Shown: positions 1,047-16,759 of the stretch, piece by piece
Layout of the letters: every line of letters starts with the position of its first letter
How positions within the stretch are numbered: the first letter of the stretch is position 1
Assembly (NCBI GenBank): GCA_009103225.1
Contig: RHPI01003587.1
Location: forward strand, 194,145 to 258,144
Direction of reading: 5' to 3'
Length of the DNA stretch: 64,000 nucleotides
From: Chlorokybus atmophyticus
Taxonomy: Eukaryota > Plantae > Mesostigma and Chlorokybus algae
Position numbers and translations under genes: made by a program
Notes under the pieces: model-generated
Database searches by the model: none
What the model saw: only the letters and a program-made list of their open reading frames with translations
Told to the model about the DNA's origin: nothing

Positions 1047-4000
1047 GCACTGTCAACCAGTAAGTACAGGTTTGGTCAGTGTCAATGCATATTGTCGCAC
1101 AAGCAGCATGTGCTGCCTATGTTTATGTGTCCGAGGGTGGACAAAGTTAGCCTGTGCTGACAGGTCAGCACATAGGAAGCAAGACCTTGTTGGTCTTGGA
1201 TTACATGTGTGCCAGGTCGCAGAGCAGCAAGTAGTATAAGGGCGTGACTACCACCTTGTGGGGCAATGAAATGCTGGCCTTGCGGAGCTATTTGTGTGTG
1301 GAGTGCCTGGCTGAAGCTGTTGAAGGGTGCTCTCCCCATCTACTCCTTGTGGGGGTGCTGCTTGCTGCTTGTTGCAAGATTTGCAATAAGTTGAACTGCT
1401 TGTGCAGAAGTTTGTGACCCTCACCAGCAGGTAAGTGAGAGGTCAGCATGACACGGAGGACTTCGTCACATACGTGCGTTATAGCCAAGCCATGGCTTAA
1501 TCAGCACGCGTGGCCACTGCGTGCAACAGCGGCATCCACGGCGCTGCCAGGCAATCATTCTTGAACTGGCTGCTGCTCGACGTATGTGCGTTGATGTTTG
1601 ACACGTGTGCTGTGATGGCAGGCATCAGCAGCAGCACATGTGAAGTTAATCATTTGCAAAGCATGCTTTGTAGCATTGCTTTATCGCCACCGGTAGATGC
1701 AAGCACCAATGCGTTTCGCAACTTAGCAGAAGGCATGGACGTGGTTGCCATAGCCAGCAACATATACAATTGTTCGGCTAGGTAGGACGTATCCAGCAAT
1801 GGCAAGGTGCTGCGGTTTTCGTGATGCTGCTGCTTCAAACATTGAAGTCGGGGTTGCCCTCTGCCAAGAGAGTGGCTGCTGCCGCTTTGGAGGGTGAAGC
1901 GCAATTTGACGAGGAGCGTCATGCGTTACAACACCCAAAAGCCATGGTTCTATTGCAAAGGTTTAATGGGGTGCTGCAAGATCAGGGGAGACAATTGATG
2001 GACATAGTTGATGTGAAACTAGGGCAAATAAGATTGTTTTTAAGCCAACTAGTTCATTTGATTTACACAAAACAAGCTTTGCTGATCAATATTCTAACCG
2101 CAATAGCTGTTTTTAAATTGATCAGACCCTCTCTCCGTTGTATTGCGAGTGCGCTAATAACCTCATATTTGTAACGACATGATCGTTCAGTTGGGTACCA
2201 TTTTCCAACCGGAAACGGTTTTAATTAGTTTATGAGTGGCTTGTTTTGGCCAATCTACGCATGATGTCACTTAGGCAAGTTCTTTTTAATATCGGCGATT
2301 AGCTTTTGACATTTTAAATTGCATTATTAGTCTGAATGAGTGATTTAAACATGCGTGCTAAGAACAATCATTCCTAATTATATATGGTGTTTATGTGTTT
2401 CATTCGCGACTTTTTTGTTTTTCAATGACACATATAGGATATAATGGATTGTTGCATATCTCAAACGCATGATGTCTGCTTCTTTCATGCACGAGTTTAA
2501 CTGATCATTCAACGCAAGACCGAGGTATATCGTAATTACTGTAAGCATGACGTGCATCTAATGTTTTTGGTGAAGACCATTATTATACTTACTTGTACTA
2601 GTATGTATATGTTTTACTATAGTGTGTATGACAACGGCATGGTTGTACTACCGCCTTATAATCCTCGCGGTTTTTTGCTAAGCCTACGTGATGGATTTCA
2701 CTTGGATTGTGTTGGGAAACATTTCCTAACTCGGCGCGCAATGGGCGCTCCAAACACGGTGCATCATGAGCCAAAACAAGTTCATAACATGCGACTCGCA
2801 TGATGAGAGACACGGGATTCGAACACACGACCACTTGGACAAAAGACAGCTCATTGAGAGCTATACTGATGTGATGACTACGACCACACACCGATGGCAT
2901 AGTGTGTTGAGAGCTATACGTAGTTAGCCGTCTCCAAGGGGTAGGCAGGCTATTTGGTCGCGCATTGCTGGGCTACTTCAAATAGCGTAGTAAATAGCCC
3001 GCCATCGACACCGTGCACAAGACCGCAGCGCGCGACCCGGGAATCCGGAGGCAAGACGTGGCCACAAGAAAAGCTTGATAGGGTAATTGTTTCTAATATC
3101 GTGCAAACAAGACGCCATCGACGATAACTTGTTGATTCATTGGTTTTTTGGCGGTCATGTATACGACAATATTGTTGTACCGGATGTAGCTACACGCCCG
3201 TCATTTTTCAACATCTTTCTAACACCTATAGCATCAGATATGACGCTGCAAAGTATACCTACGTAGGGTGTGTGTGAGGGGTTGGCAAAAATGGCTTGTT
3301 CCCTAATTTTGGCCGAGTGCCAACCACTGGTGCCAACCACGAACTTCTGCATAAGTCTATTACTGTGCGTGAAAGTTTGATTGATTGAAGTTGTATCTAC
3401 TCATACATAACCCGTTGCAAAAGACCGCATGACAAACAAGTAAGTAAGTAGAAACTTATATCCAACAGGGCTATAGAAGATGTTTTTCCCAAATATGGCG
3501 CTTTCAGAGAGCCATTAGAAATTATGTAGGCAGCGCATTACTGCGCCAAAACGCGCAGTTTAAAGTTCAACGCGTCCGTCTAAGCGCGCTCTACAAGCTG
3601 ACAACTTCCTGGCGCCATCCACACTCTCTCTCTCTCGGATGACGGAGATATCAACGAAAAACCAACTGTGGCCGAAATAAGGGTACACGCCAAAAATAGG
3701 AACATTTACCCTATACACAAAACCGCAGCCTCGCTGCATGCGCTTGCAACGTACCGTAGTAATCATTGCACGGTTTGCGACGGTGGACGTCGTGGGTTCG
3801 AGTCTCTTAAACCACTCATATAAACGACGCAATACGCGCCTCCGTGTTGCAGCCTTACAGCGCGCCGAGCTTATTTGAAAAATGTTTCCAACTGTACAAA
3901 CGTCGACCGACTTAAGCCCGGTTCCCATTGGTGTTAGCGTGCAGTTTGCTGACCCGCGGCTCGCTTAACACCAATCGCGCCGCTAACACCGAAACCCATT

Positions 4001-7422: not shown

Positions 7423-7600
7423 TATTTGACTGGTCCGTGCCGCACCATGTTTAGTGCGGAACGGACCATGTCTGGTGCGCGACTGCGCACCAGGATGTGG
7501 GGCCCCGAACGGACCAGGAATGGTCCGTCCCCCGCGGACCAGGCAGTCCTGGCCCGCGGGATACGGACAATGAATGGTCCTTGAACGTCAAGTCGTGTGC

Positions 7601-8640: not shown

Positions 8641-10081
8641 ACGTACCGGTAGGGCCGTATGGCAACCTATATCATGTTGTTTATTGCATGCGCCGACAGC
8701 CGCTTAGCAACTGTCGGCCGGCGGCAGTAATTGCCGATGGACAGTCGGAGATTGTGTGTCACTTTGATAGGCCCATAGGCTGAGCCTATGCAATTGTAGC
8801 ATTTATAGGCTGTACCAGTTACATGGACGGTGGTAAACTACATACCGGTAGCCGCGAACTCGGCGGTTGTCAATACGCCAGTACAATTTGTAGACTTGTT
8901 AGGGGCTGTCATTATGACAATGCTTAGTGATAGTAGCCAAATTGCGACTGTCAATGCAGCCAGTGTACCTTATCGGGCTGTCGATGATTCTGTGGTCGCA
9001 TGAGGCTTTTATAGGCCATTTATGAGGTTATACAAGTAAGGCTATAAGTCATAACATCTGACATTGCTTGCGCTTTTGTTTCATACAAATTATTAAAATC
9101 AATCATACCATAAACTACGCCTAGCAATGCAACATGCGAACAGCATCAACATATGTATTCATGGTATGATATTAACGGTTGTGAACATCATAATAATGTA
9201 ATAACCAACGAACTATATATAATGTAATTACACGCGCAACGCATGGATGTAAATTTGCTTTAATTATAATTGTAGACTATGTAATTGTATAGTAATCATA
9301 ACACTTTGTACAATCATATTTTTATACATTATTTTAGATATATATAATTTTGCATATGAAAGGTCTAATGCACATGTGTACGCGCATCAATATACTTACA
9401 ACAATGTATGTACATGAAATGATAGATATGAAGTAATTGCACGGCTACGTATTGCGGCCGCAATACGTCAATAATTTTTGCTTGTATACCTTAAGCCTAT
9501 TCCTACATGCACACACACACACACGTATATTTATCAACATATATATACATATGCATGTATACATATATATATATACATATGCATGTATACATATATATAT
9601 ATGTATATATACACATATCCATTTATATGTATATATTTATATGTATACACATATCCATTTATACATGTATAGGCCACAAGTGGACAGCCGCAACTGGTCG
9701 GCGGCTGTCAAGTTAAAATGTACATGGACAGCCGGCTGTCATTATACATTGACAGCCGCCGACCATTTGCGACTGTCCACTTTATGGTAAGCAGCGACAG
9801 TCGGTGCGGCCTGTCATTTATTAAATGATGATACACACAATGTACCTATGTACTCGTACATGCAATAACGATACTTCAGTCATGCTACACGTGTAGCGCG
9901 CCCTGCAGGGCCGCCAACCAGCAACATTGCTGGTCCATGCCGCCCCATACATGGTGCGGTACGAACTATGTACGGTGCGCGGCTGCTGGGCCGCTGAGCC
10001 GCGGGCCCACTCCTGGTCCGCATCCAGGAACCAGCGTAGAGTACTGGTCCGTGCCGCACCATACAAGGTGCGGCACGGACC

Positions 10082-10280
10082 ATGGGCATTACTCGTCGGC
10101 TTCAACTATTGGCCGGCGAGTTTTCGTTTAACAAATTAATAAGTAAGTGATTAATACGTATAGTTTAAGTTAGGGTTTGCCTCTGTTGCTTGACACACAC
10201 GTGTCAAGCAACAGAGCAGTTGAGGCCGTCACCTCAGCGGCGGCGTTGTTGGCGACGCTGCTGGCGACGGCGAAAATTCG
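10082..10280 (+). repeat. Split direct repeat A1 (copy A2 at 15997-16195)
   Basis: 199 bp; I see one mismatch versus A2. Contains a 16-bp perfect hairpin at 10181-10216. Confidence 0.95.
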
Positions 10281-10309
10281 GCGAAAGTTTGGGGAGAGGA
10301 GAGAGAGAG

Positions 10310-11185
10310 ATGCCGCCGAAGGGGCGGGCTGTGGCTGCTGGCGGGCAGCGCGGCCGAAAGAAGCCGGCTGCTGGAGCTGCGCAGCCAGGCAAGCAGGCCG
10401 CATCACCGGCCGGTGATGAGGGGCAGGCCAGCGCGGCCAAGCAGCGGCGAGCAGCGCGGAAGGCCACGCAGCCTGCTGCGCCGGTAGCTAGGCGTACGGC
10501 TCAGCCTGTGCCGCCAAAGTCACATGCGGCCGACGCAGAGCCAGAGCCAGAGCCAGAGCCAGAGGTGACGCTGGAAAACGCTGCAGAGCCAGAGCAAGCT
10601 GCCAAGCTAAAGCTGCCCACGGTTCCGCGACGTCAGCGTAGTAGAGTGGAATTGTCATCCACCTCGGAGGAGGAGGAGGACAACAAAAAGAAGAGGTTCA
10701 AGAGGAAGAAGAAGGTGCACAAGAAGAGACGCACGTCGTCCTCGTCATCCACCTCCTCGTCATCATCTAGCTCTGATACGGACAGCTCCGACTCTGGAGA
10801 TAGGCATACGAAATACATCAAGCACATCGGCTTCATCAAGCGCCTGTCCAAGCAATCAGAGACATATGCCTTGTGGGAGGAGTACCGCACGCGCAAGGTC
10901 TCGACTGGTGTGCAGGCTTGCTTCGAGGCGATTGGCCGTGCCCTCTTCACAGGTCCGCCAGTTGCGCAGTTGGTGTCATATCTGTATCAGATGCTGCTCA
11001 CGCACGTGCACGGTAGCGTGGACTTTGCAGCAGCTTTTGCGACCGGGGCTCGAGGTATCATCAACGACGCCCGCATCAACCGCAAACACAAGGAAGCCAA
11101 GGTGATTCGGCGCCTCACCAAGCTCGCCAACAGCTTCCAGGGCAAAGCAGCCATGCAAAAGGCAAAGACTTCTGTCCCTCAGTAA
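10310..11185 (+). CDS. gag: DIRS ORF1, Gag-like (basic/low-complexity N-terminus, helical C-terminus); likely exon 1 of a spliced gag-pol
   Basis: ATG at 10310 (MPPKGRAVAAGG...) just after repeat A, in the gag position. Ends at CA|GTAAGT, where the stop codon overlaps a donor site. Confidence 0.7.
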   Translation: MPPKGRAVAAGGQRGRKKPAAGAAQPGKQAASPAGDEGQASAAKQRRAARKATQPAAPVARRTAQPVPPKSHAADAEPEPEPEPEVTLENAAEPEQAAKLKLPTVPRRQRSRVELSSTSEEEEDNKKKRFKRKKKVHKKRRTSSSSSTSSSSSSSDTDSSDSGDRHTKYIKHIGFIKRLSKQSETYALWEEYRTRKVSTGVQACFEAIGRALFTGPPVAQLVSYLYQMLLTHVHGSVDFAAAFATGARGIINDARINRKHKEAKVIRRLTKLANSFQGKAAMQKAKTSVPQ

Positions 11186-11260
11186 GTCTGTTGCTTGTAA
11201 GAGTTGTAACACCAAACATGCAATGCGCTGACATGCACACATGCACTCTGCTTAACAGTC

Positions 11261-11640
11261 GCACAATGTGTGCGTGCAGTATGCTCAGCAACTGCTGTTT
11301 GTGTCATGGTGCAATGCGCACCTGCTTATGAACATGCACAATGTGTGCATGCAGCATGCTCAGCAGCTGCTATCTGTTGTAATGGTGCAATGCGCGCCTG
11401 TTCAACAATGGCACAATGTGTGCATAATACATGCAGCGTGCACCACAGTTGCTGTCAGATAGCATGGTGCTTCACGCACCCGTTGTATTTGATAATGCGC
11501 ACAATGTGTGCATACAACATCAGTTGCAACACCATGTCAATGGTGCCATGTGCGCCTGTGTCCACTCCCATATATATGTCAAGCAGTGCACAGCACTTGT
11601 TCATGTGTTGGTGCACAGCACATGTGCTGTTACTATTGCA
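11261..11640 (+). repeat. Degenerate ~75-bp tandem repeat within the DIRS intron
   Basis: gcacaatgtgtgc recurs at 11261, 11336, 11411 and 11499. Confidence 0.8.
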
Positions 11641-11735
11641 TTGAACAACCAGCTGCAATGGGCACGGTGCATACCTGTGAGTTCTACTTAAGGTTTGCTT
11701 CACGTCAGACCATTGATGCAATCGTGCGCCTACAG

Positions 11736-11928
11736 GCGCTCCGTCACAGAAGAGGGGAGTACCCAGTTCCAGCGTGGACGCGGTCGTGGTGGCTACGGCC
11801 GCGGTGGTCGTGGTGGTTACGGTCGCGGAGGCGGCTACAACAATCAACAGACTGCGCCCGCTCACCAGGAAGCGCTGGCATACTATGTCCCCGTGCAAGA
11901 GCAGCCACGCCTAGCATTGCAGCAGTAA
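11736..11928 (+). CDS. RGG-rich putative exon 2 of DIRS gag
   Basis: The acceptor cctacag|g at 11735 puts QRSVTEEGSTQFQRGRGRGGYGRGGRGGYGRGGGY in frame with exon 1. Ends at CA|GTAAGT (donor at 11925). Confidence 0.65.
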
Positions 11929-12118
11929 GTCATGCTGCCAGTACAGCTGCCGAGTAGCTACAGTGCAATAGCAGAAGATGTCGACAGGTGCTGGTGTGTA
12001 TCATAGCTGGCGCAAGCGCGCATGTATGCATGTATGCGCGCAACTGCGCATGTATGCATGTTTGGATGATGTATTATAGTGTACTTGAAGTGCAGCTGTT
12101 CATGGCTGACAATGGCAT

Positions 12119-14536
12119 GTGTGTATGATACACACAGCTGTATGTTACTTGACAGGGTTATTTCGCATACGAAAGGCCAATAGTCACTTCTGGTATAGCT
12201 TAATTGATTGGCATGTGCGCAGACATAGCACATCTGAAGAACTCGTCGCTATTAGTGCCATTCTTGAGGATGATTGCATGCAAGCAGAGTGGGATCCTGC
12301 AATGCCAGCTTTGGCAGTGGACCCTTTGTCCCCACCAGAGGAGCACACTGATGTTATTACACAAGTGCCACACACTGTTGCGAGCTTACCTATTGCACAG
12401 CAACAAGAGGACATTCGTTCAGTATATGCGGAGTTGTCACAAGTGTCAACAGGCTTTGAAGAGCATCCTAGCTCAGCAACCCAATGGGCAGAGCAGCTAC
12501 ACACCGAAACTCTTAATGCGGAAAATTTTGTGGCAGCCTCTTTGCAGCAGAAGCTCGCAGCATGGACCACATGGTTTCACTTGACGATGCAAAGCAAGAA
12601 GACATTTGTGCTTGACTGGTTGCGTTACGGGTATCGCTTACAATGGGTCGGCACTCAAGCATCGGATAGACGCAAGTGGGAAGAAGTACATGCATTGTTA
12701 CAGGCCGAAGGCTTTGCTGTTGAGGATATTACAATTATGCTGTCACGCAATTCCCCAACACCAGTTGTGTTTCGAAATCGCAAGTCCGCTTCTATACATC
12801 GCGAATACGTTGTCAGTGAGTTGGCAAATTTGGTGACAACAGGAGCAATCTCTGTAGTTAATGCGCACAGCGCGGCAGTGGTCACTGGCATAGGAGTGGT
12901 TGAGCAGGAAAAACGTTTGCGACTCATTATGGACCTGAGGTATATCAACCTCTTTTTGCGCCACATTCCCTTCAACTATGAGAGGTTGCGCGATATATTG
13001 CTGTACACAAAGCGCCACTTTTGGCAAGTAACAGCGGACTTGAAGTCGGGTTATCATCATGTGCCCATTCATGAGGACAGCAAGCCTTACTTGGCTTTGC
13101 GATTTGCTGGAGTCACATACAGGTGGAATGTGCTGCCATTTGGCCTGAGTCAAGCATGCTGGCTGTTTACGAACTTGATGTCCACTGTCTTCACGCCTTT
13201 ACGGGCTATGAGCTTTCCATGCCTTTCCTATATTGATGACATGCACTTCAGCCATTCCAATCGTTGGCATTTGTGCTGGCGCATTCGCCGCGTACTGCGT
13301 CTGTTTAAGGTGCTTGGAATATATATTTCTGTGAAGAAAAGCCAGTTGTGGCCGGAGCAGGTGGTACAGATGTTGGGTCTGCTGGTGGACACTGTGGCAG
13401 GCTCTTTTGCTATTCCTGCAAGCAAGCTGACCAAGCTATTGCAGCTGATGAAGGAGTTAGCAGAAGCTCCTATATTGACCAAGCGTCATCTGGCACGCAT
13501 TGCTGGCAAATTGATTGCGCTAAGACTAGCTTTTGCACCTGCAAGCATTTATGCTCGCCAGCTGATGCGTTTAGCGTTGGTTGCTGATGCATGGGACGAT
13601 ACTGTGAGTGATACGAACGCCTTCAGACACTTCTGTGAGTGGACTGCTGCTGGCTTGCAGACTTACAATGGCAACGCTTGGTGGAAGCCCCCCGTACTGC
13701 TTGAGCTGCACGTGGATGCTTCGGGTACCATTGGTTGGGGGGCGACAGGTCCTTGGCCTCGCATGGCAGGCAACTTTCAGCCTGAGCATATGTCGCTGCC
13801 TTCGGCCATCAAAGAGGCACTCGCTTATGTCCAAGCATTTACTGAAGTAGCACGCACGCACGATCTTCAGCACTGTACAGTGCGCATTATTGGCGATTGT
13901 CAACCAGCGATTCAAATGCTCAACAAGCTGTCTGCTTCTGAGCCTCATATCCTACAAGCTTTACATCAATTGTGGTCTTTGTGCTGGGAGCGTGATATTG
14001 CGCTGACATGTGTGTGGCGCTCACGTGATGAGCTGCGTGATGCGGATGCATTATCTAAATTTACTGACAGAGGAGATTGGGCCCTGACCGCAGACGCAAC
14101 CGCGCTTGTACAACAACGTGTTGGACACCCAATTTTGGATTGTTTTGCAGCTGATTGGAACAGCAAAGCACCTGCTTATTTGAGTTACATACACATGCCT
14201 GGAAGTTTGGGCAATGCTCTTACTACAAACTGGCGCGATGTTCTTCAACGCTTAGGGGGCGGCTTTGTTTGGTGTCACCCGCCATTGGCCCTCCTGCATG
14301 AAGCCATAGCATTATTGCAATATTACCAGCTGCCAGCTGTGGTGTTGGTGCCTGAATGGCACTCTGCTGTGTGGTGGCCAGTGTTCCGCAACTGGCAATT
14401 CACTTATTATGAGAGATTAGGCCCACGGCCCGAATGGTTTGAACGTGGTGCTCGAGTACCCGAAAACAGCATCAACCCTGGACGCTACCCATACATTTGT
14501 GCTTTTGTGCATTGGGTAAGCGCACCTTTCGTGTAG
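12119..14536 (+). CDS. pol: DIRS reverse transcriptase - RNase H - adenine-methyltransferase-like polyprotein
   Basis: Uninterrupted 805-codon ORF with DLKSGYHHV, LPFGLSQA, YIDD (RT); LHVDAS, IIGDCQ, DADALSK (RNase H); LDCFA...WCHPPL...VLVPEW (MT-like). Confidence 0.95.
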   Translation: MCMIHTAVCYLTGLFRIRKANSHFWYSLIDWHVRRHSTSEELVAISAILEDDCMQAEWDPAMPALAVDPLSPPEEHTDVITQVPHTVASLPIAQQQEDIRSVYAELSQVSTGFEEHPSSATQWAEQLHTETLNAENFVAASLQQKLAAWTTWFHLTMQSKKTFVLDWLRYGYRLQWVGTQASDRRKWEEVHALLQAEGFAVEDITIMLSRNSPTPVVFRNRKSASIHREYVVSELANLVTTGAISVVNAHSAAVVTGIGVVEQEKRLRLIMDLRYINLFLRHIPFNYERLRDILLYTKRHFWQVTADLKSGYHHVPIHEDSKPYLALRFAGVTYRWNVLPFGLSQACWLFTNLMSTVFTPLRAMSFPCLSYIDDMHFSHSNRWHLCWRIRRVLRLFKVLGIYISVKKSQLWPEQVVQMLGLLVDTVAGSFAIPASKLTKLLQLMKELAEAPILTKRHLARIAGKLIALRLAFAPASIYARQLMRLALVADAWDDTVSDTNAFRHFCEWTAAGLQTYNGNAWWKPPVLLELHVDASGTIGWGATGPWPRMAGNFQPEHMSLPSAIKEALAYVQAFTEVARTHDLQHCTVRIIGDCQPAIQMLNKLSASEPHILQALHQLWSLCWERDIALTCVWRSRDELRDADALSKFTDRGDWALTADATALVQQRVGHPILDCFAADWNSKAPAYLSYIHMPGSLGNALTTNWRDVLQRLGGGFVWCHPPLALLHEAIALLQYYQLPAVVLVPEWHSAVWWPVFRNWQFTYYERLGPRPEWFERGARVPENSINPGRYPYICAFVHWVSAPFV

Positions 14537-15766
14537 GTAACGGTGCATGATAACAGAACTTCTCCATGTGCCTTGAGCTTGTATTTCTTCCAGAGTAACG
14601 CCACAGCGGAAGGCGCTCTGAGCGGCACCACGTCTGAAAGAGTGCAACCCCAGGTGCGGCCTATATATGCCACATGCCTTGCAGCAGCGCGCAATTGCAT
14701 GGTATGCACAGTTACCAGACATGCTATGTTCTTCCCACTTCAACCTATTCTTCGCAACAGGCCGAAATAGAGGACCAGCGGTGATGGCAAAGCAGCTCCC
14801 GCGACAGTAGGTCAAATAGGCATAGAGCACTTCAGAGAACTCCACAGGCAAACCACTGCTGCGCACTGGTATAGTGGGTGCACCTCCAGTGCTGTAATTC
14901 TTGAGATGTGTTACAGTGGCCGTCAACCCAGAACCTGCCGCTTGTATCTCGTGCATCTGTAAACGCGCACCTTCACCACCCCGTTGCCATGTGCACCATA
15001 GGTATAGGCAAAGTGCATAGTCGCGCCAGAGCACAGCCTTATCATGTGTGACTGTCAGTTGCTGAGGTATGGTAAACAGCTGGTGTTGGAAGTATGCGAT
15101 AAGCGTTCGCATGTCATCAATTGCCAATGGCACAGCAGGAATAGGTTGAACTCCTTGCCGAGCAGCAATCTTTGCATATCCTTGACGGAACTCGCGCACG
15201 TCTATGGACAGAAGCGGGTTCCCTGTGGATGTGTCGCTGTCCCATGGGCTGATGCGCCCTAGAAGTCTGAAGGAGCATGTGAGATGTGAGATCACATTGT
15301 CTAGTGTGGTGCTGGCGATCATGCGATGACCATGGCGGTCGAGCCTGCGAGCTTTGCCGATGTGTGTGTCGGTCCAGTGCCCAGCAAGGTAGCTTGTGAC
15401 AATAGCTGGGGTGACGTTGGCGACGGCAATGTTGAGCTCAGGATGTTGCAGGTAGTTGGCAAACTCTTGCCAGACGCGATCGCGTTGGTCGCGAGTGCCA
15501 TCAGATACAGCTTCACGACTGATGCGCTCTACTTCCAAAAGCGCTGCTGCTGCTCGCTCTCGCAGATTACACCCCATTACTTGCTGTGGACGCACAGTCG
15601 CGCGTGCGGTGCGTTGTGCATCAGCGGTATGTTGCAAGCGCTGTGCGAAGTCCATCTGCACAACGATCACACACATTGTCAGACGACTGCGCGCAGCACT
15701 CTGCGCAAGGATCAAACACTGTGTCAGGCAACCAAACAAAACTATCTTGATTTGCAACTTTGGCAA
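14417..15766 (-). CDS. Tyrosine recombinase (DIRS integrase), antisense to RT
   Basis: Intact ORF with QRGGE, GPLFR, LHSFRRG, GTWRS and RYL catalytic motifs. Probable start MDFAQ at 15655; overlaps the RT ORF tail-to-tail by 120 bp. Confidence 0.93.
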   Translation of the reverse strand: MPKLQIKIVLFGCLTQCLILAQSAARSRLTMCVIVVQMDFAQRLQHTADAQRTARATVRPQQVMGCNLRERAAAALLEVERISREAVSDGTRDQRDRVWQEFANYLQHPELNIAVANVTPAIVTSYLAGHWTDTHIGKARRLDRHGHRMIASTTLDNVISHLTCSFRLLGRISPWDSDTSTGNPLLSIDVREFRQGYAKIAARQGVQPIPAVPLAIDDMRTLIAYFQHQLFTIPQQLTVTHDKAVLWRDYALCLYLWCTWQRGGEGARLQMHEIQAAGSGLTATVTHLKNYSTGGAPTIPVRSSGLPVEFSEVLYAYLTYCRGSCFAITAGPLFRPVAKNRLKWEEHSMSGNCAYHAIARCCKACGIYRPHLGLHSFRRGAAQSAFRCGVTLEEIQAQGTWRSSVIMHRYLHERCAYPMHKSTNVWVASRVDAVFGYSSTTFKPFGPWA

Positions 15767-15832
15767 TACAAATACACCAGGCTCTACACCTACAACTCGT
15801 CCCTACTGATATATGCTTGGGAGGGGGAGGTA

Positions 15833-15999
15833 GAATGTTCAATGCATTCGCAGTTGTTCATCGTGTAAATCATACTTATAACGATGAACGCGTATGATCG
15901 TAGGGCTTAGGTGTTCTTGCCAAAGTTGGACTGTAGGTAGGATAATTGTTTGAAACAAAAGGAATGTAAATCGTTCATCGTGTGCAAAGTAGTATAATG
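15833..15999 (+). repeat. Split direct repeat B1 (copy B2 at 16434-16600)
   Basis: 167 bp; I see one mismatch versus B2. Confidence 0.95.
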
Positions 16000-16759
16000 G
16001 GCATTACTTGTCGGCTTCAACTATTGGCCGGCGAGTTTTCGTTTAACAAATTAATAAGTAAGTGATTAATACGTATAGTTTAAGTTAGGGTTTGCCTCTG
16101 TTGCTTGACACACACGTGTCAAGCAACAGAGCAGTTGAGGCCGTCACCTCAGCGGCGGCGTTGTTGGCGACGCTGCTGGCGACGGCGAAAATTCGCCCTT
16201 CCCGCCCCACCCTGATGCGCCGCCGCGCTTCACAAGAACTATGCGCCTCGTCTCGATTGCGCTTTCAAGTTCATGCTCATGCTCAGGAACGAGATAAGTG
16301 GATCGTGATTCTAAATGCATTCGTCTCGGTTGAATAGGATCCGGGTTGCGTCAACGGCGTGCTGCTGACCGTGCGATTACGTTGTTACATCGACGGTATT
16401 TCGCTTCATTGCTAGCCGCCGTCGGTACATCCCGAATGTTCAATGCATTCGCAGTTGTTCATCGTGTAAATCATACTTATAACGATGAACGCGTATGATC
16501 GTAGGGCTTAGGTGTTCTTGCCAAAGTTGGACTGTAGGTAGGATAATTGTTTGAAACAAAAAGAATGTAAATCGTTCATCGTGTGCAAAGTAGTATAATG
16601 TGTGGTGCGCTACTGCGCGCCAGGTGTTGGGGCCCCAAAAGGACCATGCACGGTCCGTCCCTCACGGACCAGACACTCGTGGTCCGCGGGGACGGACCAT
16701 GTATGGCCCGCGGGGTCCGTGGAAGGACCATGCATGGTCCCCGAACGTCAATCCGTGTG

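Follow-up and report, generated by a model that had tools for sequence, protein, structure and literature searches.

How a retrotransposon can make its Pol protein when two stretches of apparently non-coding DNA lie between gag and pol is the question raised by a locus of the alga Chlorokybus atmophyticus. We analysed 64,000 nucleotides (nt) of contig RHPI01003587.1 (the window, whose own numbering is used below), in which a complete, young PAT/DIRS-type tyrosine-recombinase retrotransposon of about 6.5 kb occupies positions 10085-16600. The plus strand of the element carries gag and then pol, a gene for a reverse transcriptase (RT), an RNase H and a putative methyltransferase; the recombinase gene is inverted, on the minus strand. 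An earlier sequence-only reading had rightly seen a retrotransposon gag-pol here, which it took to be joined by the removal of two introns, and had missed both the PAT/DIRS tyrosine-recombinase class and the antisense recombinase gene. Our analysis makes it rather likely that splicing joins gag to pol in this element, and host splicing would then probably decide the amounts of each of its proteins. What is new here is comparative evidence from relatives, together with caution over GTAAGT stops that occur by chance.

Putative splicing signals between gag and pol

The proposed transcript has the following parts.

10310-11181, plus strand: exon 1, Gag-like, 290 amino acids; open frame 10169-11185, with the stop TAA inside the first GTAAGT
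11182-11735, plus strand: putative intron 1, 554 nt, with GTAAGT donor, ttgat and cag acceptor
11736-11924, plus strand: exon 2, a 63-codon RGG/RG-box cassette; open frame 11692-11928, with TAA inside the second GTAAGT
11925-12222, plus strand: putative intron 2, 298 nt, with GTAAGT donor, cttaat and cag acceptor
12223-14536, plus strand: exon 3, Pol; pol frame open 12110-14536

The signals on which the two introns had been proposed were all present. Both GTAAGT donors, at 11182 and 11925, are preceded by CA and lie within an identical 9-mer, CAGTAAGTC. The acceptors are cctacag (to 11735) and gtgcgcag (to 12222), and the branch-like motifs ttgat (11713-11717) and cttaat (12199-12204) each stand about 19 nt before their own AG with no AG between. 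The exon sum, 872 + 189 + 2314 = 3375 nt, was confirmed with the frame checked exon by exon. As separate translations, exons 1, 2 and 3 are open in window frames 2, 1 and 2, respectively. Both introns fall after the second codon base, so that the codons at the junctions are CAG and CAA; exon 2, as a symmetric cassette, could be skipped without loss of frame. Upstream, the pol frame is bounded by an in-frame TGA (12107-12109), and an ATG in the pol frame, at 12125, sits inside putative intron 2. Alternative in-phase acceptors would start exon 2 at 11709 or 11760, and exon 3 at 12184, 12199, 12229 or 12256.

Of the 509 open frames in the window with 60 codons or more, 7 end in G-TAA-GT, and two of these seven are the consecutive open reading frames (ORFs) considered here. 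The word CAGTAAGT was found 8 times in the window versus 1.9 expected. The two donors therefore appear to exceed chance moderately, and we take their signature as supportive, not conclusive.

Coding content of exons and spacers

A codon-usage contrast was built with the recombinase gene and the conserved region of pol as training sets. The N-terminal extension of pol and exons 1 and 2 each scored positive in frame and negative off frame, and each spacer gave negative scores whatever the frame. Exon 2 had the highest in-frame score of the element, in the only frame that is open there. The G+C content of exons 1 and 2 is 0.60-0.64 versus 0.47-0.48 in the spacers, and a degenerate 75-nt tandem repeat occupies positions 11261-11425, inside intron 1. 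A 144-codon open frame inside intron 1 was considered and rejected: its codon score is negative, and it translates to repetitive junk rich in Cys, Ala and His. Also rejected was a -1 frameshift out of gag, because that frame dead-ends at 11331.

The ATG at 10310 is the first of the element and follows a 225-nt leader without any ATG. From the gag stop to the first pol-frame ATG there are 44 ATGs. Ribosome scanning or reinitiation to pol on unspliced RNA thus appears implausible, and pol would need splicing, an internal promoter or an internal ribosome entry site (IRES). The spacers hold 52-57 ATGs per kb (52 in intron 1) versus 25 per kb in the window. Exons 1 and 2 are four-fold depleted in ATG, and both putative introns are rich in the words GCATG, CATGCA and TGCGC.

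The RGG box of exon 2 is built on a 24-nt (8-codon) internal repeat, and neither exon 1 nor exon 2 contains a CCHC motif. The box is a plausible RNA- or nucleic-acid-binding tail for a Gag lacking a zinc knuckle. The N-terminal half of Gag is disordered and rich in Ser, Lys and Glu; residues 163-287 were modelled as a six-helix bundle at low confidence (single-sequence AlphaFold2, all-helical model, predicted local distance difference test score 55). No homologues of exon 1 were found in a word search or in the ESM Atlas, and Pfam returned only the low-complexity family SR-25.

Evidence from related elements

We found 20,905 database relatives of Pol. Identity is 31-34% for the best of them, and the alignments begin at residues 12-50; the top matches share the RT-RNase H-methyltransferase layout. 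Homology to the Pol of relatives begins 12-20 residues past the proposed acceptor 2, and the 33 codons from ATG 12125 to this acceptor have no counterpart in them. A far acceptor at 12385 was ruled out by where Pol homology begins, which leaves those with exon starts at 12184-12256.

A profile-guided scan of metagenome contigs, based on a 5-sequence alignment, gave 38 loci with Pol relatives at 25-40% identity. More than 20 of these loci, representing at least seven sequence families, have a strong polypyrimidine tract and YAG directly followed by the second half of a Gag CCHC knuckle (C-x4-H-x4-C). In the loci that include the upstream gag ORF (L006, L012, L019 and L030), this ORF ends with the first knuckle half (C-x-x), which is followed by a conserved ATAAGT, 346-391 nt before the acceptor. 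The CX2CX4HX4C knuckle is restored solely by removing the intervening DNA. The putative gag introns, each with ATAAGT at its 5' end and YAG at its 3' end, are the following.

L006:887-1274, putative gag intron
L012:1589-1934, putative gag intron
L019:1988-2378, putative gag intron
L030:1680-2070, putative gag intron

These introns, which come from four families, have A instead of G at +1, and AT...AG is a very unusual boundary pair. A divergent, decayed relative (L017:700-840) has the exact knuckle junction (GPYFK/CGEFGH) without intervening DNA and would come either from a lineage lacking the intron or, as a processed copy, from spliced RNA. The putative gag intron of L006 contains the internal split repeats B1-A2, so that splicing would deprive the RNA of replication signals.

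Five families (with sites in L005, L006, L009, L012 and L020) have one in-frame stop between the knuckle exon and Pol, followed by Leu and then an acidic Pol N-terminus. The stop context in L006 is TGA CTA G (1350-1355), and TGA CTA is a known readthrough context. This suggests that programmed stop-codon readthrough makes Gag-Pol in Pat1-like elements; the single in-frame stop with Leu before Pol implies that the Pol of this clade would be made as a Gag-Pol fusion. The two arrangements match in position. Intron 1 of the window element lies just before the nucleic-acid-binding tail, as does the gag intron of the relatives, and intron 2 separates the RGG tail from the Pol N-terminus, at the place taken by the readthrough stop in the relatives.

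The Pol ORF of several relatives ends in TTTAG/GTGAG(T/A/C), with the stop inside a consensus donor (L002-L007, e.g. L006:3366-3376; L005:2205-2215; L016:3766-3776). This donor-like end lies about 180-320 nt before the recombinase ORF, and L006 has a good acceptor at 3590-3592. A pol-recombinase fusion by splicing in L006 was rejected, as the obvious acceptor is out of phase.

Expression model and alternatives

In the model that we favour, the plus-strand transcript would be translated from the first ATG, at 10310. Unspliced RNA would yield only a 291-residue Gag, the frame stopping in the retained donor. Removal of intron 1 by the host spliceosome would give a Gag with an RGG RNA-binding tail, of about 354 residues, and removal of both introns, or skipping of exon 2, would give Gag fused to the RT-RNase H-methyltransferase. 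Splicing efficiency, or splice-site strength, would set the ratio of the products in place of the stop-codon readthrough of the relatives, and the recombinase would be expressed separately from the opposite strand. The Gag : Gag-RGG : Gag-Pol ratio set by splicing, which the sequence-only reading had put forward, is in this sense a logical consequence of the model. Since the genomic copy keeps both introns, the full-length unspliced RNA would have to be the replication template.

The donors, the coding contrast, the ATG load and the relatives all support the splicing interpretation, in which the exact acceptors are not fixed. Several observations weigh against it. The immediate stop on retention of either intron, to which the sequence-only reading had pointed, is present in both ORFs but fails as separate evidence, because any GTAAGT donor in that phase reads xxG-TAA. 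Two other long ORFs of the window, both in a neighbouring gypsy element, end in G-TAA-GT accidentally. There are three suitable in-phase AGs for intron 1 and six for intron 2, close to the number expected by chance, and the acceptors therefore carry no statistical weight; for each of the two acceptors named above, the chance that it is exactly the one used is in our estimate a little short of even. The base at -1 of both donors is A instead of the usual G, and the polypyrimidine tracts of both introns are weak. Public protein collections contain nothing more than 45% identical to pol (best 45% over 304 amino acids) and nothing for gag; no transcript-derived or same-species protein was found among them. 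Finally, there is no detectable gag homology between the window element and its intron-bearing relatives, whose Pol is 25-40% identical, and the shared intron position is therefore argued by analogy.

Part of this evidence can be read in favour of separate cistrons, in which Gag, the RGG mini-ORF and Pol would be translated independently, Pol starting at ATG 12125 or 12278 on subgenomic RNA from an internal promoter in the spacer or by an IRES, and the GTAAGT motifs would be coincidental. The ATG at 12125 is in the pol frame, five codons past the upstream stop, with a purine at -3. In the databases, many relatives appear as separate Pol proteins that begin with a Met close to where exon 3 would start, although these starts were assigned by gene callers. 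The chance G-TAA-GT ends in the gypsy element and the freedom of acceptor choice would fit as well. Nevertheless, the joint chance of finding one 9-mer donor at the ends of two successive ORFs is about 1e-4 to 1e-2, an out-of-frame ATG at 12117 overlaps ATG 12125, and the codons that follow ATG 12125 are the 33 without counterpart in relatives. The DNA of the relatives, moreover, shows Pol in frame after Gag past a single stop, that is, a fusion, and a free 71-residue RGG peptide is not expected of a eukaryotic polycistron. We consider separate cistrons unlikely. We give only a very small probability to a dead copy, in which the spacers would be later insertions or decay that broke a continuous or readthrough-linked gag-pol and left the ORFs and motifs as residues. 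It is true that one copy was examined and that intron 1 is mostly degenerate 75-nt tandem repeat, of a type that can expand in non-functional DNA. However, the repeat pairs of the element differ by one base each, gag, pol and recombinase are intact, no target-site duplications or terminal repeats lie beside the spacers, no copy of either spacer occurs elsewhere in the window, and each spacer begins exactly at the stop embedded in GTAAGT.

Splicing could also be real and yet yield a main product other than Gag-RGG-Pol, by joining donor 1 to acceptor 2 or by using other acceptors, with exon 2 being minor or regulatory. The equal phase of the introns, which keeps exon 2 skipping in frame, and the in-phase acceptors at 11709, 12184, 12199, 12229 and 12256 would allow this, but no other part of the element has a coding signal as strong as that of exon 2, which is also followed by a perfect donor; the probability of such an outcome is in our view small.

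If splicing is confirmed, the Ogre-type strategy reaches recombinase retrotransposons, introns are stably kept in elements that replicate via RNA, and a mechanism is implied that bars spliced RNA from replication. Pol expression and Gag/Pol balance are largely unstudied in DIRS-order elements, which have no protease or obvious frameshift, and the present comparison provides a testable model: readthrough with a gag intron in the relatives, two introns in the algal element. For annotation, ORF-based transposable-element pipelines would report three genes, namely gag, an orphan RGG peptide and pol. A broader and doubtful extension is that spliceosome dependence may be an old, clade-wide trait of PAT/DIRS-type elements, the gag intron before the binding tail having persisted both in streptophyte algae and in the hosts, probably animals, of the metagenome elements, and the second intron having replaced readthrough in the alga. 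Were this true, unspliced genomic RNA would be sorted from spliced mRNA, as in retroviruses, and three or four Gag-containing isoforms would be set purely by splice-site strength.

Comparison with known systems

The precedent first suggested for this locus was Athena, a Penelope-like element. Penelope-like elements including Athena (PMC8557442) do share the keeping of spliceosomal introns after retrotransposition. They differ in having an unrelated RT clade, a GIY-YIG nuclease or none, and target-primed integration, and their best-studied intron is in the 5' untranslated region and joins no gag to pol. The RT of the window element groups with DIRS/PAT Pol and its integrating enzyme is a tyrosine recombinase, which places it outside the Penelope/Athena elements.

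The closest precedent is instead Ogre, a Ty3/gypsy element of legumes, in which, according to the summaries of Neumann 2003 and Steinbauerova 2008 given in PMC6317226 and PMC3735527, an intron between the gag-protease and RT-RNase H-integrase ORFs is spliced in part of the transcripts. Like the element described here, Ogre has a non-coding spacer with splice signals between gag and pol (here two spacers, each GT...AG, whose removal gives one frame). As in our model, splicing is needed for the polyprotein, and partial splicing would set the Gag/Pol ratio. In both, the intron persists in genomic copies, so that unspliced RNA would be the template, and the host is a streptophyte. Ogre differs in being a long terminal repeat (LTR) and integrase element with one intron and experimental proof, whereas the window element has a tyrosine recombinase, two putative introns of the same phase and an RGG cassette. 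The elements copia and BARE1 (PMC3735527) also adjust Gag/Pol stoichiometry by splicing without frameshifting, as proposed here, but with the logic reversed: their Gag-Pol is encoded by the unspliced RNA, and a Gag-only subgenomic RNA arises when splicing takes out pol or makes a stop.

Within the tyrosine-recombinase elements, PAT elements have split direct repeats and their recombinase may be inverted (PMC3266345, PMC4157794). Kangaroo, of Volvox carteri, resembles the window element in its RT and RNase H, probably in its methyltransferase, in its opposite-strand recombinase, the repeat order A1...B1A2...B2, the absence of a Gag zinc finger and a green-lineage host. In kangaroo the internal repeats lie between methyltransferase and recombinase (PMC4157794), whereas here B1A2 is downstream of the recombinase gene (15833-16195), a placement shared with the 'novel' inverted-recombinase form of Daphnia (PMC4157794). 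The window element further differs from kangaroo in a 238-nt unique spacer between A2 and B2, and no public sequence exceeds about 34% identity to its Pol. Introns are cited for kangaroo-1 transcripts in PMC1636488; they go unmentioned in two overviews of DIRS and tyrosine-recombinase elements. The Pat1-like metagenome loci (L002-L038) belong to the same Pol clade and share a gag intron before a nucleic-acid-binding tail and the Gag-Pol fusion, which in the window element is proposed. They differ in a CCHC knuckle split by the intron, in the donor ATAAGT, in B1A2 lying inside the intron, in a readthrough stop (TGA CTA) instead of a second intron and in a recombinase on the same strand.

Other features of the element and its surroundings

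The RT of Pol lies at about 12974-13381, with YIDD at 13229 (PF00078, E 1.8e-17), and the N-terminal region has an FVLDWL motif at 12605. RNase H follows, with DAS at about 13709; D498, E531, D558 and D608 are invariant in alignments with relatives, and the relative L006 scores on RT_RNaseH. The putative C-terminal Dam-like methyltransferase (about 14069-14383) matches PF05869 weakly (E 0.002, 18.3 bits, below the cut-off of 28.1). Its D-x-F-A and PP motifs are invariant among relatives, and L006 reaches E 6e-6. Two database relatives of about 1250 amino acids, P0030 and P0151, have at the N-terminus a region similar to cytosine-5 DNA methyltransferases, with motifs I (FAG) and IV (PC), and resemble the DNA methyltransferase-bearing DIRS elements of Symbiodinium (PMC5890265).

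The recombinase gene and the repeats of the element are listed below.

14417-15766, minus strand: tyrosine recombinase, 449 codons (PF00589, E 9.8e-6, 25.9 bits versus a cut-off of 27.1)
10082-10280, plus strand: split direct repeat A1 (5' terminus), 199 nt, 1 mismatch versus A2
15833-16600, plus strand: 3' repeat block, consisting of B1, A2, spacer X and B2
15833-15999, plus strand: B1, 167 nt, 1 mismatch versus B2; abuts A2 with a 3-nt overlap
15997-16195, plus strand: A2, 199 nt, 1 mismatch versus A1
16196-16433, plus strand: unique spacer X, 238 nt, between A2 and B2
16434-16600, plus strand: B2, 167 nt, 1 mismatch versus B1

The recombinase matches the phrog_1 integrase (E 3.9e-9, residues 45-370) and has the motifs R (GARLQM), HSFRRG (HxxR) and HRY (HxY); a word search and a PDB sequence search gave no match. 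Its gene and the 3' end of pol overlap tail-to-tail by 120 nt.

The repeats are in the order A1 ... B1-A2 ... B2, that is, split direct repeats as in PAT elements. The copy is intact, with a single mismatch in each of the A and B pairs and all ORFs open. No further copy of the element was found anywhere in the 64-kb window. Both copies of repeat A contain a near-perfect 16-bp hairpin (10181-10219 and 16096-16134) of -31.9 kcal/mol (z = -5.5), about 90 nt upstream of the gag ATG, which could be a priming, packaging or recombination signal. An Rfam scan of the element returned nothing but sub-threshold microRNA noise.

The insertion site of the element lies among palindromic repeats of a GGACCATG...CATGGTCC family (7429-7470, 9929-9970, 10043-10084 and 16639-16691). 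At the left junction GGACCATG is followed by GGCATT, and at the right junction TATAATG is followed by TGTGG. An ATG found in the flank recurs at the B1/A2 junction and at the right end of the element and is a possible recombination core.

The neighbouring Ty3/gypsy LTR retrotransposon occupies 30834-36916 of the window, with LTRs at 30834-31414 and 36339-36916 (581 nt, 97-98% identical). Its gag encodes a capsid and a zinc knuckle, and its pol is broken by several frameshifts. The stop of this gag, which lies in CAGTAAGT, was considered as a second case of a stop within a donor and rejected: pol and gag overlap by 78 nt, with a -1 slippery heptamer, G_GGA_AAC, at 32613-32619. The second GTAAGT-ended ORF of the gypsy element was rejected as well; it is a frameshifted integrase fragment in which the motif encodes a conserved S-K-F in the true frame.

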